Virus record (IMG/VR): IMGVR_UViG_3300042350_004528
Span: 234,834 to 298,833 of that record
Reading direction: 5' to 3' (one strand)
Length of the DNA: 64,000 nucleotides
Shown: positions 1,976 to 63,981 of the stretch, piece by piece
Layout: every line of letters starts with the position of its first letter
How positions within the stretch are numbered: the first letter of the stretch is position 1
Notes under the pieces: generated by a model
Database searches by the model: none
The model's input: the letters and a program-made list of their open reading frames with translations, nothing else
Told to the model about the DNA's origin: nothing
Program-made: the position numbers and the translations under genes

Positions 1976-2000
1976 TTTTTTATTTTCTTTAAATGTTGTA

Positions 2001-2008
2001 CAAAGATA
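2001..2008 (-). promoter_or_regulatory. Bacteroidota-type sigma-A -7 element TAnnTTTG (representative copy)
   Basis: TATCTTTG on the minus strand upstream of 1975. The motif recurs in intergenic gaps upstream of minus-strand genes, e.g. 5240-5247, 9383-9390, 28924-28931, 30975-30982, 40535-40542, 46195-46202, 46295-46302, 63870-63877. Confidence 0.8.
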
Positions 2009-2032
2009 AGTTAAAATTTTTAAACCACCAAA

Positions 2033-2542
2033 TTATTTAATTTTTCCAATGATATCCAACATTCTTTCGAGTTGTGGATTCTTGTGGGCTGTGGACTCAT
2101 TTAAATTTGAAGTGCCCTTGGAGATGTTAACTGGTGCTATGTTCGCACCGCTACTGAGTAAGTCTTGTAATTCACTATCCGATAATTTTTCAGCATCTAT
2201 TTCTACAAATGTACGTGGGTCATACCTTCTACCACGAAAAGATATTGGTCTATCGTAAGACTGTTGATATGCTGTACTTGCGAATGGCATCATGGACGTC
2301 CCATTATTACCAATAGTTTCAGATCTAACCATGGTTGTTGCCCCAGTTAAAATATCACCACTAGTGCCAGTTTTTTTACTTATGAACTCCTGTGACGCAG
2401 CGCTAGTTTGCTTTGGGTTATTGTTCTTTATTTTTATCGCAGATACAGTTTCGTGATTTATAGTTGCACTCGAACTCTTGGGTTCGCCAGTTTGATTTAT
2501 CAACTTGATAAATTTTGCAAGTAATCTAAAAAGAATATTCAT
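2033..2542 (-). CDS. Hypothetical protein
   Basis: 169-aa ORF, co-oriented. Confidence 0.6.
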   Translation of the reverse strand: MNILFRLLAKFIKLINQTGEPKSSSATINHETVSAIKIKNNNPKQTSAASQEFISKKTGTSGDILTGATTMVRSETIGNNGTSMMPFASTAYQQSYDRPISFRGRRYDPRTFVEIDAEKLSDSELQDLLSSGANIAPVNISKGTSNLNESTAHKNPQLERMLDIIGKIK

Positions 2543-6002: not shown

Positions 6003-6770
6003 TTACAAATCATTAAATAACTTGATCATATCCGAGATATCAACAACACCCTTTTTCTGAATCACATGAGTTGCACATTCGTTTGCAAAGAAAATGCTAG
6101 TCTCAACATGCCTTGTTTTAATTAACGCAGCGGTGAACGCGGCGATAAAAGTATCACCAGCCCCAGCCACATCCCTAACATCAACCTTTTTTGTTGGATA
6201 GTTATTGCCATTAAGGTCACAACCATCACCACCTTTAGTGATTAATAATTTATTACTTATCTTATTGATAACGTTATTATTATGCGCTGGGTTCTTACTT
6301 TCTGAATGATTAACTTTGATATATGTTGCATTAGTTATCCACGACCCGAAAGGTTTCTTAGTGTCAACTGTCGATATGTTGCTATTCGCTATGATATACT
6401 CAATCATCTCTGTCGTTAAAAATCCCTTGTCGTAATCGGATATAATAACAGCATCATAGTTAGCAAACTCAACGCTTGATATTTTACTGAAAACCAGCGG
6501 TTCAACAACATCACCATCATCAACTCTCAATAAAATGTAATTGGATTTCTCATCTACATAACGAGTCTTAACCATGTTTGTTTCTTGGTAAATAAAATCA
6601 ACATCAATACCCAATGATTTTAAATTAGCAACAACATTACCAGCCATACCTGGATTAGTTTTGGTATCGATTGGTTTAAATACTGGTGTGGGGGCTTCTG
6701 GGTTTAACCTGGAACACTCTCCATAGATAAATTTATCTATACAAATTTCACCGATAACTAAAATTTTCAT
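6003..6770 (-). CDS. PfkB-family kinase, RfaE/HldE-like heptose-7-phosphate kinase domain
   Basis: RLNPEAPTPV, GMAGNV, ISDYDKG, DVAGAGDTF; start placed at MKILV. Confidence 0.85.
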   Translation of the reverse strand: MKILVIGEICIDKFIYGECSRLNPEAPTPVFKPIDTKTNPGMAGNVVANLKSLGIDVDFIYQETNMVKTRYVDEKSNYILLRVDDGDVVEPLVFSKISSVEFANYDAVIISDYDKGFLTTEMIEYIIANSNISTVDTKKPFGSWITNATYIKVNHSESKNPAHNNNVINKISNKLLITKGGDGCDLNGNNYPTKKVDVRDVAGAGDTFIAAFTAALIKTRHVETSIFFANECATHVIQKKGVVDISDMIKLFNDL

Positions 6771-28705: not shown

Positions 28706-28720
28706 AAATGATATAAAACA

Positions 28721-28752
28721 AAAAACCCTGAGATTTTGTCCCAGGGCTTCTA
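28721..28752 (-). terminator. Intrinsic terminator of attenuator A
   Basis: CCCTGGGA-CAAAA-TCTCAGGG followed by a U tract; its 5' arm (TAGAAGCCCTG) is complementary to 28801-28811 in the leader ORF. Confidence 0.85.
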
Positions 28753-28785
28753 CTATTTTATATAATTAGTTTCCAAAAAAAATCG

Positions 28786-28884
28786 TTAACTAAAAGACAA
28801 TAGAAGCCCTGTTCCAGCTGGATATGCTGGAGCTGCTGGACAACTATACGGCCATGCCACGATATTTTTGTTCAAATTTTTCAT
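28786..28884 (-). CDS. Leader peptide A (32 aa) MKNLNKNIVAWPYSCPAAPAYPAGTGLLLSFS
   Basis: Hand translated; codons 10-23 are all Ala/Trp/Pro/Tyr/Ser(AGT)/Cys, the species in the downstream array. Confidence 0.8.
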   Translation of the reverse strand: MKNLNKNIVAWPYSCPAAPAYPAGTGLLLSFS

Positions 28885-29051: not shown

Positions 29052-29129
29052 TGGGGCGAACGATGAGGTTCGAACTCACGACCTCCTGAACCACAATCAG
29101 GCGCTCTAACCAACTGAGCTACGTCCGCC
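29052..29129 (-). tRNA. tRNA-His(GTG) with encoded G-1, C73 and CCA
   Basis: CCTGA-TTGTGGT-TCAGG. Confidence 0.92.
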
Positions 29130-29139
29130 ATGTAATCCC

Positions 29140-29982
29140 CTACCTGTTGGTGGGGATTAAGTTATTTAAATATTCTCTATTTTGAGTAAAGATTGGTGTT
29201 TCGACATCCAATTCCCAAGCGCTTCTGGTGTAAACATCCTTTGGATCAATCACAACCGTATCACGATTGACTTCCGCATTGGCACTTTTACGAACAAACG
29301 TCTTTTCAATTTTTCTGATTATACCACCACGTTTTTCTCTTGGTGAGTAATCATTCCAATTTGTACCAGCCTGAAATATCAATTCTTGCATACCATCGGT
29401 CTTAACCCCATGTAATTGTTTTGGTGAGTATAAACTCTGAGCGACCGATGAAATTGAATTTCTGGTCGCATCTTGTTGTCTCCAGATGAAATAATTCTCA
29501 ACCTCAACTTTTTGTGGGATTTGAAATACCCTGGCATCAAACATAGCCAATTTAGGTTCGCTGGCGTATCTTTTATCCGTCACAGACTTTCTCTCGATAA
29601 CATGTAGATTCTTAATATAACGATCCATTCTCAATTTATTAAAGATGGCTGTTGCCATTGAGGCTGAAACGCTCGCCATTTTCTGTAAGTTATTATCGAA
29701 CCAAGCTTGTGTGCCCTCATCTTCAAAATCGGTGATCAAAATTGAAATCTCATCTGATTGCACATACGCAAACTTAGCACCCATAATGTTTTTACATAGA
29801 TATGCCGCTGTCTCATCCATATCATCAATCAAATCCAAATCAAATGGCCTTCTCAAACCTTTTGTATAGGTGTGAAAAGCCTTACCATCAATTCTGATAA
29901 TGGTGTAACCTCTTCTTGGTAATGAAATACGAGTTCTATCCTCATAGTTCGATTTCATTCTGTCTCCTAATGCGTCTTTCAT
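29140..29982 (-). CDS. thg1: Thg1-like tRNA(His) guanylyltransferase / 3'-5' polymerase
   Basis: RIDGKAFHTYT, YVQSDEIS, FDARVF, WRQQDATRNSIS. Confidence 0.92.
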   Translation of the reverse strand: MKDALGDRMKSNYEDRTRISLPRRGYTIIRIDGKAFHTYTKGLRRPFDLDLIDDMDETAAYLCKNIMGAKFAYVQSDEISILITDFEDEGTQAWFDNNLQKMASVSASMATAIFNKLRMDRYIKNLHVIERKSVTDKRYASEPKLAMFDARVFQIPQKVEVENYFIWRQQDATRNSISSVAQSLYSPKQLHGVKTDGMQELIFQAGTNWNDYSPREKRGGIIRKIEKTFVRKSANAEVNRDTVVIDPKDVYTRSAWELDVETPIFTQNREYLNNLIPTNR

Positions 29983-30512: not shown

Positions 30513-30561
30513 AATATTTCACAAATATAAGAATAAAAATGTTAATTAACAAGTTTATTTT

Positions 30562-40401: not shown

Positions 40402-40442
40402 GTCTATATAAATATGTTCGTTTTTAAAAAAGTGCAACTATC

Positions 40443-40524
40443 GGACTAACCTTTACAAACTTTCCGAAGAAAGCTTTTGGGGTTGAACCAAATTTAACCA
40501 GAGTTAGTTGCTGAATTTAGTCCC
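40443..40524 (-). ncRNA. Stem + TTCAGCAA motif small RNA candidate
   Basis: GGACTAA/TTAGTCC closing stem, TTCAGCAA after the 5' arm, starts just after a TAnnTTTG promoter. Confidence 0.55.
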
Positions 40525-40580
40525 AATTGCGATACAAAGATAAGAAATGTTTTTTTAATAAACAAGTATTTTTGAAAATT

Positions 40581-44285: not shown

Positions 44286-44377
44286 GCTGATTAAAGGGAA
44301 TTGAACCCAATCCTCCAGCCCTGTCCACTTCTATCCTGAAGCAACTAGGGCCAGTGTGCCCATTACACTATAACCAA
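44286..44377 (-). ncRNA. tRNA-like RNA with a 24-nt insert replacing the anticodon loop
   Basis: TTGGTTA/TAATCAG acceptor, GTGT/ACAC D-stem, GGCCCT/AGGGCT stem, GGG-TTCAATT-CCC T-arm. Confidence 0.6.
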
Positions 44378-45098: not shown

Positions 45099-45116
45099 AA
45101 TAAGTAAATAAAACAC

Positions 45117-45235
45117 AGGATGCGTTTATACGTGCTCTAACCAACTGAGCTATCGACCTCATACGAAGCCGAGTGGGACTCGAACCCACGACCCCGAGGT
45201 TGACATCCTAAAGTTTAATTTGCGGAATGCATCCT
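45117..45235 (-). ncRNA. Circularly permuted tRNA-like RNA (YrlA/Y-RNA-like)
   Basis: AGGATGC/GCATCCT terminal stem + TTCCGCAAA; T-arm precedes D-arm; acceptor stem closed by a GTAT loop. Confidence 0.75.
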
Positions 45236-45321: not shown

Positions 45322-45327
45322 GTTTAG

Positions 45328-45449
45328 AGCCCAGAGCTGGATTCGAACCAGCGCCTTTTTTTTCCATAAAAAATTGTTAGATAGTGATTTGCTGAAATCA
45401 TCCACACTGGATGACTCTTTTTTTAATGCTACCGCTACACCATCTGGGC
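45328..45449 (-). ncRNA. tRNA-like RNA with anticodon arm replaced by a hairpin + TTCAGCAA module
   Basis: GCCCAGA/TCTGGGC acceptor, D-loop-like segment, TCATCCA-GTG-TGGATGA hairpin + TTTCAGCAAA, GCTGG-TTCGAAT-CCAGC. Confidence 0.7.
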
Positions 45450-45527: not shown

Positions 45528-45710
45528 ATATTTGATGGTGTCACAACTATATACCATCAGCTACGGAACCCTTCTGTTAATAAGTAAGTAGGAGATTTAA
45601 AAATCTCGTCCGTATCAAATCCACGCCATTGGTTACGTTGTCTCACGACAAGAGGCTTTACCAAGGCAAAGTTTTAATTTTTTCACCAATATGTCAAAGA
45701 ACAATCTTTG

Positions 45711-45783
45711 AGCCACATGACGGGATCGAACCGCCGACCTACTGATTACAAATCAGTTGCTCTACCAGCTGAGCTAATGTGGC
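45711..45783 (-). tRNA. tRNA-Thr(TGT)
   Basis: ACTGA-TTTGTAA-TCAGT. Confidence 0.92.
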
Positions 45784-45788
45784 ATCTG

Positions 45789-45861
45789 TGGTGCGGGGAG
45801 GAATCGAACCTCCGACACAGGGATTTTCAGTCCCTTGCTCTACCAACTGAGCTACCGCACC
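45789..45861 (-). tRNA. tRNA-Phe(GAA)
   Basis: AGGGA-CTGAAAA-TCCCT. Confidence 0.92.
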
Positions 45862-46001
45862 AAGTAAAGATAATGGTTGGATTCCCGTTACACCCAACTC
45901 TGTACTGCTTCTTGAGTTTTACAAGCGCTTGGCAGAGGGAGCTGATTTCTTCGGCCCAAACTCGCTTGTCGACAGCTTATTTGGAGAAACCCATTATCTT
46001 C

Positions 46002-46100
46002 GTAGCGTATGTGGGATTCGAACCTAAACCAACTATTCATGCTTCGTTGGCCACCTGTACACGGGCTCATGACTGCGCCGTGCTCTCCAAGAGTACGCTA
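46002..46100 (-). ncRNA. tRNA-like RNA (acceptor + T-loop, non-canonical core)
   Basis: TAGCGTA/TACGCTA acceptor, GG-TTCGAAT-CC T-loop, internal TCATG/CATGA stem; no 7-nt anticodon loop found. Confidence 0.5.
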
Positions 46101-46334
46101 TGTATTTTAAAAGTTACAATTCATCGGAATGTGTTTGTTTTCCATTAAAAGTAGAGTTTGTATTATTTGCCGAATACATTCCCGAATTGTGGTACAAAAG
46201 TAAGAACAAAATTTTTAACCTGCAAATACTTTTGAAACTTTTTTCATTTTTTTTCAAAGAACTTATTTTAACGCTTGCTCTCGCAATTGTGGTACAAATG
46301 TAAGAACGAAACTTCAAACTCGCAAACTTTCAAC

Positions 46335-46369
46335 AAAAAAAAACCCGAACTTTTGGTTCGGGCTTTCTA
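46335..46369 (-). terminator. Intrinsic terminator of attenuator D
   Basis: GCCCGAAC-CAAAA-GTTCGGGT + long U tract; TAGAAAGCCCG is perfectly complementary to 46401-46411 in leader D. Confidence 0.88.
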
Positions 46370-46391
46370 CTATGGTTTACACAATGAATAA

Positions 46392-46469
46392 TTACACCAA
46401 TAGAAAGCCCGTAGATGAGTCCTCGCCTCTTCCAAAGAATCTATTCGTTGTATTTATCACTCTTTTCAT
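46392..46469 (-). CDS. Leader peptide D (25 aa) MKRVINTTNRFFGRGEDSSTGFLLV
   Basis: 14 of codons 3-17 are read by tRNAs in the 42743-45861 array. Confidence 0.8.
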   Translation of the reverse strand: MKRVINTTNRFFGRGEDSSTGFLLV

Positions 46470-46604
46470 TGAATGTTTTATAAGTTTTGTATAAATATAG
46501 GTAACTTTATAAAAAAGTCAAGTTTTTGAAAAAAAATATTTTTATCTACGATAAATACTTTATTATTGGTTGATATAACTTATATTTAAGTTATATTTTT
46601 TTTA

Positions 46605-62446: not shown

Positions 62447-63847
62447 TTAAGCTGTAATAGGCTCGTAACGTGCACTATGTACAGTTTTATTCATGATGCT
62501 GATTGGTGACATATCCTCACCAGTCAACAATGATTTTAAAATTGCTGGAGAAAACCCACTCACCAATGCAGTACCGTTGTCGGTAGTCTGAACTGGGTAG
62601 TTTCCACCATTTCTGCTTTGAATGTTCCAGAATACCAATTTTGGCATTGTGTAACCAGCGGACTCGTATTGTTCACGAATCATATCCAAAGCGCTGTTTT
62701 TATAACGAGTTGCTGAATTGAACTCCATATCTGACATAATCAGAATAGTTGTTGGCATCTCAGACTCTGGTAAGCTGAATTTTTTAGCTTGATTCAAGAT
62801 CAAATTAAAAACCGCTTCCAAATTTGTACTCATACCCCAGTCAGCTCTCGCCAATTGCATGTGGCGATCACTTAAGTTACCGTTAAGGTATTGCAATTGT
62901 GGGTTTTCACTAAAAGTTATGAAAGCGTCTTTAAACTTACCTTCATTTCTTTCTGAAATGTAAAGACCCAAAGAGATACAAACATCCATACATGTAACGT
63001 TAGCGTTACCACCAGCTGGTGAACTCATTGATCCAGATACATCGCATACTGGTAAAACTCGCTCATTGTTACCTTCCATGTAATTAGGGAGTGAAGCCCA
63101 TTGCTTCATAGCCATGGTTTTGTCCCCTCTAACTAATGTTTTCAACACATCATATGGATATACCGCAGATGCGTTTACCTTAGTATCGCCAGTTTTGTAG
63201 GCTGTAAAACGTTCAGCATCGTGTTTACCAAATGCTTTAGTATAACGAGCCATAGCAACAGATGGTACGTGTTCATATGTAACAACACCCCATTGATTTG
63301 AGCACATAAGTTGTTCAACCACCTTGGTTTTTTCAACCAACATCTTACGATATTGTTTAGGTGATAGCTTCATATAACGCTCCAATGCGATTGCTTCTTT
63401 ACCTTTACGAGGCATCCATTTAGCGCAAAGACCATTATTTTCGTTAAGAGCATTAACGATAAGGTTTTTTGCCTGGGTATCCAATGAGGTGCCAAATAAC
63501 ACTAAAAGATCGTCCCAACGTCCATATTCTGGAACGTATGATAGGTTTTTAGCCAAAGCCTCGTTATGGTTTTCAACCAAATAAAGCATTAAATCCTTGA
63601 AAATTTGACGCTCACCCGCACCACCACGAACGTCACGAGCCCAGAACATAGTTCTAAGAGCGGTTAATGGACTTTCGTTGAAAGCTTTTGAAAAGTTAGC
63701 GATTAATCTTCCCTTATCTTGACCACGCATCGCACCGATGGTGAAAAATAAATCAACACAAGCGTTCAATGATGAACTGTTAGTAACCATTCCGTTTTCG
63801 GTTACATTGTCTCTTGTTCTAAGAGCATTTACTAATGAGTTTGCCAT
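62447..63847 (-). CDS. DUF2828-type TROVE/Ro60-like protein with C-terminal vWA domain
   Basis: FWARDVRGGAGER, YGRWDDLL, AKWMPR; MIDAS DVSGS, SDMEFN, VFWNI, VSGFSP. Confidence 0.8.
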   Translation of the reverse strand: MANSLVNALRTRDNVTENGMVTNSSSLNACVDLFFTIGAMRGQDKGRLIANFSKAFNESPLTALRTMFWARDVRGGAGERQIFKDLMLYLVENHNEALAKNLSYVPEYGRWDDLLVLFGTSLDTQAKNLIVNALNENNGLCAKWMPRKGKEAIALERYMKLSPKQYRKMLVEKTKVVEQLMCSNQWGVVTYEHVPSVAMARYTKAFGKHDAERFTAYKTGDTKVNASAVYPYDVLKTLVRGDKTMAMKQWASLPNYMEGNNERVLPVCDVSGSMSSPAGGNANVTCMDVCISLGLYISERNEGKFKDAFITFSENPQLQYLNGNLSDRHMQLARADWGMSTNLEAVFNLILNQAKKFSLPESEMPTTILIMSDMEFNSATRYKNSALDMIREQYESAGYTMPKLVFWNIQSRNGGNYPVQTTDNGTALVSGFSPAILKSLLTGEDMSPISIMNKTVHSARYEPITA

Positions 63848-63981
63848 ACAATAGGTTTTAATTAGGGTACAAAAGTAATAAAGATTTTTTAAATAGTCAA
63901 GTTTTTGGGCGTTTTTTTTTCAATTTTTTTTCAAACGCTACTTTAACCTCCTCATTTATAGAGTATAAGAGTCCACCATCT

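Follow-up and report, generated by a model that had tools for sequence, protein, structure and literature searches.

We analysed a 64,000-nt stretch of DNA, here called the window, which is part of the 298,833-bp viral contig IMGVR_UViG_3300042350_004528. All 27 tRNA genes of the window and its tmRNA are encoded on the minus strand. The window also has genes for tRNA repair or maturation (an RNA ligase, a CCA-adding enzyme and a Thg1-like enzyme). Four modules, designated A to D, each contain a promoter, a small leader ORF and an intrinsic terminator, and each precedes an array of tRNA genes (Table 1). Module A ends 16 nt before the array Tyr, Pro, Pro, Trp, Cys; module B precedes Lys, Val, Ile-GAT, Ser-TGA and, later, His; and module C precedes Arg-ACG, Leu-TAG, Leu-TAA and Gln-TTG. 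The phage tmRNA (38774-39152, minus strand; 78.8 bits) lies 3' of array C. The gene for the Thg1-like enzyme, a tRNA-His guanylyltransferase (29140-29982, minus strand), is directly upstream of tRNA-His (29052-29128, minus strand); both belong to the unit that begins with leader B, which itself has one His codon.

Promoters of the form CTTG/TTTG-N19-20-TAnnTTTG are located upstream of leaders A, B and C. The pattern CTTG-N20-TAnnTTTG occurs five times in the window, compared with 0.83 expected. Besides the sites upstream of leaders A, B and C, it matches at 30522-30553 and 63870-63901 (both minus strand), one of them in array B immediately ahead of tRNA-Ser. Only one of 63 ORFs of the phage has a Shine-Dalgarno motif. 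Based on the promoter form and the near-absence of these motifs, the host is probably a member of the Bacteroidota. Since nearly all ORFs of this phage lack a Shine-Dalgarno motif, its lack before leader D is normal for the genome.

Array D consists of 11 canonical tRNA genes with a Y-RNA-like element among them. Its transcription unit probably ends at a strong terminator 3' of a 116-aa ORF. This ORF, which has a weak helix-turn-helix match, may be co-transcribed with array D because it is placed between the last tRNA of the array and that terminator. The Y-RNA-like element is a match to YrlA (45099-45221, minus strand) that falls below the gathering threshold (45.9 bits against 69; E 2.6e-8). 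The phage also encodes a Ro/TROVE-like protein (DUF2828/DUF7788, phrog_850; 62447-63847, minus strand), which suggests that the two form a candidate phage Ro-Y RNA pair. When introns were allowed, ARAGORN reported two odd tRNA candidates, Val-AAC and Ser-GGA, each with insertions. They lie at 45327-45449 and 44286-44377 (both minus strand) and exactly fill gaps in array D; GTG and TCT codons are also present in leader D.

Module D starts with a promoter, P1, of the Bacteroidota type (-33 TTG, -7 TAnnTTTG-like) that also scores as sigma-70-like (TTGACT-16-TATATT). Its -7 box deviates from the consensus in ending with A, not G. P1 is kept in two related viral loci (L002 and L082), and it has no other gene to serve, as the adjacent upstream gene is divergent. 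Behind P1 lies the leader ORF, and its last codons overlap R1, the 5' strand of a predicted antiterminator helix. The core of this helix, formed by CGGGCTTTCTA (46411-46401) and TAGAAAGCCCG (46369-46359), is 11 bp long, as had been claimed in an earlier note on this DNA, and it reaches 14 bp with two G-U pairs. Ten nucleotides are common to R2, the 3' strand, and to the 5' arm of the intrinsic terminator, so the antiterminator and the terminator are mutually exclusive. In modules A, B and C, 9-16 nt separate the end of the terminator from the first tRNA. Module D is the least direct of the four, with 477 nt between its terminator and tRNA-Phe and two promoter-like sequences, P2 and P3, in between.

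Table 1. Modules A to D with their parts, and neighbouring features of array D
Feature	Position	Strand	Remarks
Module D overall	46522-46330	minus	promoter, leader ORF, predicted antiterminator, overlapping terminator; matched codon fraction 0.71 (0.42 expected)
Promoter P1	46522-46492	minus	CTTG (46522-46519), 19-nt spacer, TATATTTA (46499-46492)
Leader ORF D	46469-46392	minus	25 codons, MKRVINTTNRFFGRGEDSSTGFLLV plus TAA; starts 23 nt after the -7 box
Sensor codons 3-17	46463-46419	minus	all 9 non-Met species of array D covered
R1, antiterminator 5' strand	46411-46398	minus	within the last leader codons
R2, antiterminator 3' strand	46372-46359	minus	46368-46359 doubles as terminator 5' arm
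Intrinsic terminator	46368-46330	minus	13-pair hairpin (46368-46338), loop CAAAA, then T run
Promoter-like P2	46326-46295	minus	TTTG-N20-TACATTTG, directly 3' of the terminator
Promoter-like P3	46226-46195	minus	TTTG-N20-TACTTTTG
Conserved element of ~85 nt	46190-46108	minus	3' of P3
Array D	45861-42742	minus	Phe-GAA, Thr-TGT, Asn-GTT, Asp-GTC, Arg-TCT, Glu-TTC, 2x CAT (Met), Gly-GCC, Gly-TCC, Ile-TAT
Strong terminator	42320-42290	minus	3' of the 116-aa ORF (42675-42325, minus)
Module A	28955-28721	minus	promoter 28955-28924, leader 28884-28786, terminator 28751-28721; matched codon fraction 0.26 (0.10 expected)
Module B	31006-30808	minus	promoter 31006-30975, leader 30949-30863, terminator 30840-30808; matched codon fraction 0.41 (0.18 expected)
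Module C	40566-40267	minus	promoter 40566-40535, leader 40401-40321, terminator 40295-40267; matched codon fraction 0.40 (0.10 expected)

Codon content, folding and conservation of leader D

The earlier note had read codons 3-17 of leader D as a series running from AGA GTG to GAC, and re-reading of the leader gave exactly the same series. The tRNAs of array D can read 14 of these 15 codons; the sole exception is GTG (codon 4), which has no cognate tRNA in the array. Over the whole leader, 17 of 24 codons are matched and 9/9 non-Met species are covered (P=1.8e-4, with codons drawn from the phage's own usage as the chance model). This clears a high bar, as array D can read 42% of all phage codons. 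For codons 3-17 alone the match has a P of 5e-7, a value that applies to a stretch chosen after the fact. The leader had also been said to sample every canonical tRNA of the array. That description holds for the non-Met species, while Met is represented by the start codon only, as ATG. Among the four modules of the window, in which the match of each leader to its own array has a P between 3e-3 and 3.5e-5, codon coverage is most complete in leader D. None of the four leaders matches the arrays of the other three modules. Each sensor codon of D occurs one to three times, and stalling would be signalled less strongly than by the runs of codons in the his and pheA leaders.

The position of these codons relative to R1 was considered by assuming a 3' ribosome footprint of roughly 12 nt. 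With any of codons 3-16 in its A site, a ribosome would end upstream of R1 (46411). With TAA in the A site, the usual footprint geometry predicts that it would cover ~46409-46382 and thereby 12 of the 14 nucleotides of R1. The regulatory codons are located at least 8 codons ahead of the leader stop.

Folding of the segment from R1 to the U tract gave the antiterminator as the minimum-energy structure when R1 was free (-24.7 kcal/mol, compared with -21.6 kcal/mol when the terminator was forced). When R1 was masked, as a ribosome at the stop codon would do, the terminator formed at -16.6 kcal/mol, the terminator alone having -16.2 kcal/mol. The two conformers are only ~3 kcal/mol apart. The minimum-energy fold of the full naked transcript contains the terminator. 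We dropped this full-length fold as an argument, since it is dominated by long-range A-U pairing with the U tract.

Both helices were then compared across five D-type orthologues, a small sample that amounts to two lineages and an intermediate. In the antiterminator, three pairs have changed on both sides, including a U-A / U-G / C-G series. In the terminator, 100% of cells are paired and there are four two-sided changes. Slid controls were all worse for either pairing. On the scale of the whole family, the best duplex between a leader and its terminator 5' arm was stronger than that of shuffled sequences (z<-2) in 18 of 28 modules, with a median z of -3.7. In these 18 modules R1 is located at the leader stop, and the duplex ends from 17 nt before to 22 nt after the start of the stop codon. 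A four-segment design like that of trp, in which a hairpin between sensor and R1 acts as protector, was tried and rejected. Such a hairpin is visible in naked-RNA folds of D, but it is no stronger than in shuffled controls (z=0 for D, family median z -0.3). Because this pairing is no better than that of shuffled sequence, we describe the switch as having three segments, R1, R2 and R3.

A metagenome scan with the switch alone as query (R1, gap, R2) returned seven stretches. The leader ORF is intact in all seven, as well as in four viral-contig orthologues, and two variant forms (3/7 metagenome stretches) have gained an internal ATG. In the alignment of the leader, the gap between the two D-type lineages is 9 nt long, a multiple of three. 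Relative to two relatives, leader D has identical codons at 17/20 and 16/18 conserved residues. In the neighbouring gene of the same two relatives, the protein is 70-72% identical and the fraction of codons kept is 0.49-0.54. The orthologues also keep the leader stop beside the antiterminator strand, along with synonymous codons. These comparisons indicate that codon identity or RNA pairing, or both, are under selection in leader D; the nucleotide-level conservation of the sensor could in part reflect RNA pairing rather than codon identity.

Modules in related phages

Relatives were collected with the gene adjoining module C as anchor, which gave 68 viral loci, and modules were sought mechanically as a small ORF followed by a terminator and then a tRNA. 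They were present in 31 of the 33 related loci with at least three tRNAs and at the start of 44 of 50 tRNA runs in the related phage contigs. The same pipeline returned no modules in the tRNA region of a T5-like phage, which served as control. Three of the modules are very simple and would be the easiest to test. A leader in L086 (5302-5346, plus strand) has five consecutive Gln codons (QQQQQ) before Gln-TTG and Gln-CTG, and a Ser/Arg-rich leader in L148 (13041-13118, plus strand) precedes Arg-ACG and four tRNA-Ser genes. In L110 a Lys/Val/His leader (6192-6272, plus strand) stands before Lys, Lys, Val and His. A 35-codon leader in L090 covers 14 of 15 non-Met species of a 16-tRNA array, and its 33-codon relative in L109, before another 16-tRNA array, covers 15/15. 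One of the related loci, L135, has a tRNA with anticodon TTA at ~1990-2070 (plus strand), which would read the stop codon TAA.

Searches by other routes added a few modules. A GDP-mannose dehydratase gene was rejected as anchor, being too conserved: among 80 loci only L002, which has a D-type module, and L024 were informative. The L024 phage contig contains two more modules. The Thg1-like anchor gave few viral contigs with tRNAs at the locus, one of which (L224) contributed a distant module, and the switch pattern found three real matches in viral contigs plus a chance match in a GC-rich coding region (L234). Among GenBank phages there were tRNA-sized matches only and no close relatives, and a search through the Thg1-like gene yielded no cultured relative. 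By protein similarity, the closest records are huge uncultured phages that lack annotation (50% identity on a GMP-reductase-like gene), in whose syntenic regions no tRNAs were found.

Across 27 non-redundant modules the mean excess of matched codons was 0.194, compared with 0.004 +/- 0.021 after permutation (0/20000). Leaders were also compared with the different arrays of the same genome. The fraction of matched codons was 0.45 for a leader's own array and 0.18 for the other arrays (P=9e-8), and the fraction of tRNA species covered was 0.95 and 0.44, respectively (P=2e-14). Leaders track their own arrays in this way across 32 non-redundant modules. Among codons whose amino acid the array serves, the synonymous choice fits the isoacceptor of the array in 114 of 163 cases versus 77.8 expected (z=6.3), including 22/24 for Ile and 19/20 for Arg. 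The codon match is codon-specific, beyond being amino-acid-specific. It also depends on position. In codons 2-6 the matched fraction equals background; it is 0.5-0.7 across codons 7-17 and no higher than background over the final seven codons, which are those beside and over R1. The match falls in the part of the leader in which a stalled ribosome would leave the antiterminator strand free.

With these results in mind, we regard it as extremely unlikely that the leader of D is a chance ORF beside an ordinary terminator with a coincidental codon match. Some matching is to be expected of an array that reads 42% of phage codons. Against this stand the P value of D by itself, the outcome of the 20000 permutations, the positional profile, the covariation and the module-free T5-like control.

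The earlier note had pointed to modules A and D as paralogues, and the shared features that it named are all present: TAGTAGAA(A)GCCC in both, a loop containing CAAAA, and peptides ending in TG(L/F)LL (TGLLL.. in A and TGFLLV in D). It had also proposed an alignment with a covariance model. Such a model was built from eight D-type switches with the antiterminator as structure, and its best match outside the training set is module A (28710-28816; 41.7 bits, E about 5e-5 in 560 kb searched). The model further recovers four D-type switches in the searched loci, all of them training sequences. Of its weaker matches up to E=1, all but one lie at other pre-tRNA modules, the exception being the opposite strand of D. 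Alignment z-scores group modules A to D with many foreign modules into a single family. The description of A and D as a duplicated and re-tuned switch is therefore fair, but it applies to the family as a whole, in which A and D are not a unique pair. Most leaders start with M-x-x-x-x-N-I (A and B in the window; L084, L090, L098, L100, L103 and L024), and those codons are unmatched to the arrays. This start may be a mark of shared ancestry or a requirement of the start region.

The recurrence of this start and of a G-(L/F)-L-L end in many leaders, together with conservation of the D peptide in close relatives (20/25 residues), could also be taken to mean that the small ORF encodes a functional micro-protein and that the hairpin is simply its terminator. 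We consider this very unlikely. The middle of the peptide changes completely from module to module, in step with the tRNAs that the array contains; the residues conserved at the C-terminus are encoded by R1; and synonymous sites are conserved beyond what a protein would need.

Proposed mechanism and comparison with known attenuators

Taken together, the sequence features make it likely that module D is a ribosome-mediated transcription attenuator that places a phage tRNA array under demand-driven control. As the earlier note had proposed, D looks like an attenuator, and this interpretation is supported by the exclusive folds, the two-sided changes, the conserved ORF and the leaders that track their arrays. 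We predict that transcription would start at P1 and that the 25-codon leader would then be translated. If all sensor codons are decoded promptly, the ribosome would reach TAA and cover R1. R2 would then pair with the 3' arm of the terminator, and the transcript would end at ~46338-46330. If a charged tRNA is scarce, the ribosome would wait at a sensor codon (3-16/17) and leave R1 free. R1 would pair with R2 once the latter is made, the terminator would be blocked and RNA polymerase would enter the array. This scheme presumes that the leader is translated and that single hungry codons stall a ribosome enough. Since the sensor codons are those read by the tRNAs of the array, synthesis of these tRNAs would be shut off by the tRNAs themselves, so that feedback would be demand-driven and would act at the level of the isoacceptor. 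Because tRNAs are stable, such a loop can raise the supply and cannot quickly lower it. A shortage might arise from host tRNAs that are poorly matched to the AT-rich codons of the phage, from host tRNAs being lost as infection proceeds, or from anticodon nucleases of the host.

An attenuator of this kind might instead sense something broader, such as amino-acid starvation or how translation as a whole fares during host takeover. The modules are built like amino-acid attenuators, and a stalled ribosome reports on charged cognate tRNA, for which amino-acid shortage and tRNA shortage look the same in the sequence. The regulated genes, however, are tRNAs, which bring no relief from amino-acid starvation. 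In addition, the synonymous choice follows the downstream isoacceptor and not the amino acid (z=6.3), and every array is preceded by a separate leader that fits its content. We therefore judge a broader signal to be unlikely and favour sensing of the tRNAs themselves.

When the modules are considered jointly, we lean, with somewhat less confidence than for module D itself, towards the reading that large phages with hosts of the Bacteroidota type equip each tRNA sub-array with its own codon-programmed attenuator, drawn from one duplicating, re-tunable family that may serve as a sensor of host tRNA loss. The tRNA genes would then be regulated by the decoding activity of their own products, and sensor codons would be swapped as tRNAs change arrays. 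A fall in host tRNAs, for instance through cleavage by anticodon nucleases of the host, could then switch on the phage replacement set only when it is needed.

Amino-acid operons with attenuators (trp, his, leu, pheA) use ribosome position on a translated leader to select between a terminator and an alternative helix, and the thr and ilvGMEDA leaders mix codons for several amino acids. The modules described here resemble these systems in having a short leader ORF near the promoter, an intrinsic terminator before the regulated genes and an antiterminator helix (11-14 bp) that shares a strand with the terminator. A modified form of a further likeness is seen in module D, in which the codons mirror the downstream anticodons and are placed so that a stall would favour the antiterminator. 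By their anatomy the modules appear most like the multivalent thr and ilvGMEDA leaders and would carry the defining features of such attenuators except for the protector segment. In contrast to amino-acid attenuators, the targets are tRNA genes rather than biosynthetic enzymes; the sensor comprises up to 9-15 different codons in one to three copies each; the synonymous choice is isoacceptor-specific; and the modules are phage-encoded, with one per sub-array. Unlike in trp, a fourth segment (the 1:2 helix, or protector/pause hairpin) is no better than chance. No Rfam leader family matched in the window at its gathering threshold. The best match below threshold was Thr_leader (RF00506; 26 bits versus a gathering score of 55), and it involved the terminator part only.

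The modules would also share with T-boxes the principle of a transcription antitermination that responds to the condition of one particular tRNA, read by way of its anticodon. T-boxes bind uncharged tRNA directly and without a ribosome (by Stem I, the specifier codon and the T-box sequence), and their targets are synthetase or amino-acid genes. Module D, in contrast, has a translated ORF and many codons rather than one specifier, and a T-box search with Rfam gave no match at the gathering threshold in the window and none at E<=1 in 45700-46560. The pheST attenuator of E. coli is a case of leader-peptide attenuation of a component of the translation apparatus; it differs from the modules in having a single amino-acid specificity, a protein gene as target and a cellular origin. 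Sensing through few codons is made plausible by a his-leader codon-speed reporter (PMC4046918), which was engineered as a laboratory tool in Salmonella, is no natural element and involves no control of tRNA genes.

Full-text literature searches, whose coverage left out most subscription journals, found no description of attenuators before tRNA genes. The new elements here are the tRNA-gene target, a mixed set of codons that mirrors the anticodons, and phage-encoded modules, one for each sub-array. Phage tRNA genes are common, and to our knowledge the control of their expression is largely unknown. If the modules work as their anatomy implies, they would be the first known case of attenuation controlling tRNA genes and the first known sensor of isoacceptor supply rather than of amino-acid supply. 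They would provide a direct mechanistic link from the state of the host tRNA pool to phage tRNA production, of relevance to codon-usage compensation, host tRNA degradation and tRNA-targeting defence, and would give a function to dozens of small unannotated phage ORFs. The natural programmes are many, from Gln-only and Ser/Arg leaders to those that sample every tRNA of a 15-16-tRNA array. As the modules are short, modular and so variously programmed, the hypothesis is easy to test, and they could be used as ready-made codon-specific sensors of translation.

The region between terminator D and tRNA-Phe

P2 and P3 have the same consensus as the promoters of modules A-C. Because both are located between the terminator and the first tRNA, module D cannot be the sole control of array D. 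From this arrangement, array D very probably has an unattenuated supply, to which D would add on demand. Readthrough from P1 is predicted to make a material contribution to array D alongside P2 and P3.

A stronger form of this caveat would make module D real but marginal, with array D transcribed essentially from P2/P3 and the leader and terminator left as a relic of duplication or serving another output, for example a short leader RNA. The consensus match of P2/P3, the presence of P3 in all D-type relatives, the deviating -7 box of P1 and the 477 nt to the first tRNA would all fit. A relic, on the other hand, would not be expected to keep its ORF, the placement of its stop, codon identity and, through compensatory changes, both helices. 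These features have been kept although the neighbouring protein is only 61-72% identical, and the codon coverage of leader D is the most complete of the four. A marginal role for D is thus quite unlikely in our view, and we prefer an attenuator that supplements P2 and P3.

P3 and the conserved element behind it are present in the window and in every D-type relative (L002, L082, L084 and L134). An element in a similar place is found between the promoter and the leader of module C (40438-40535, minus strand). Folding of the post-P3 element and of the one before leader C was no better than that of shuffled sequences. Closer to tRNA-Phe there is a tRNA-like sequence (45995-46091, minus strand), uncalled by ARAGORN or Rfam, with a matching 7-bp acceptor-like stem and a TTCGAAT motif. 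It is kept in L082, with compensatory changes in one arm.
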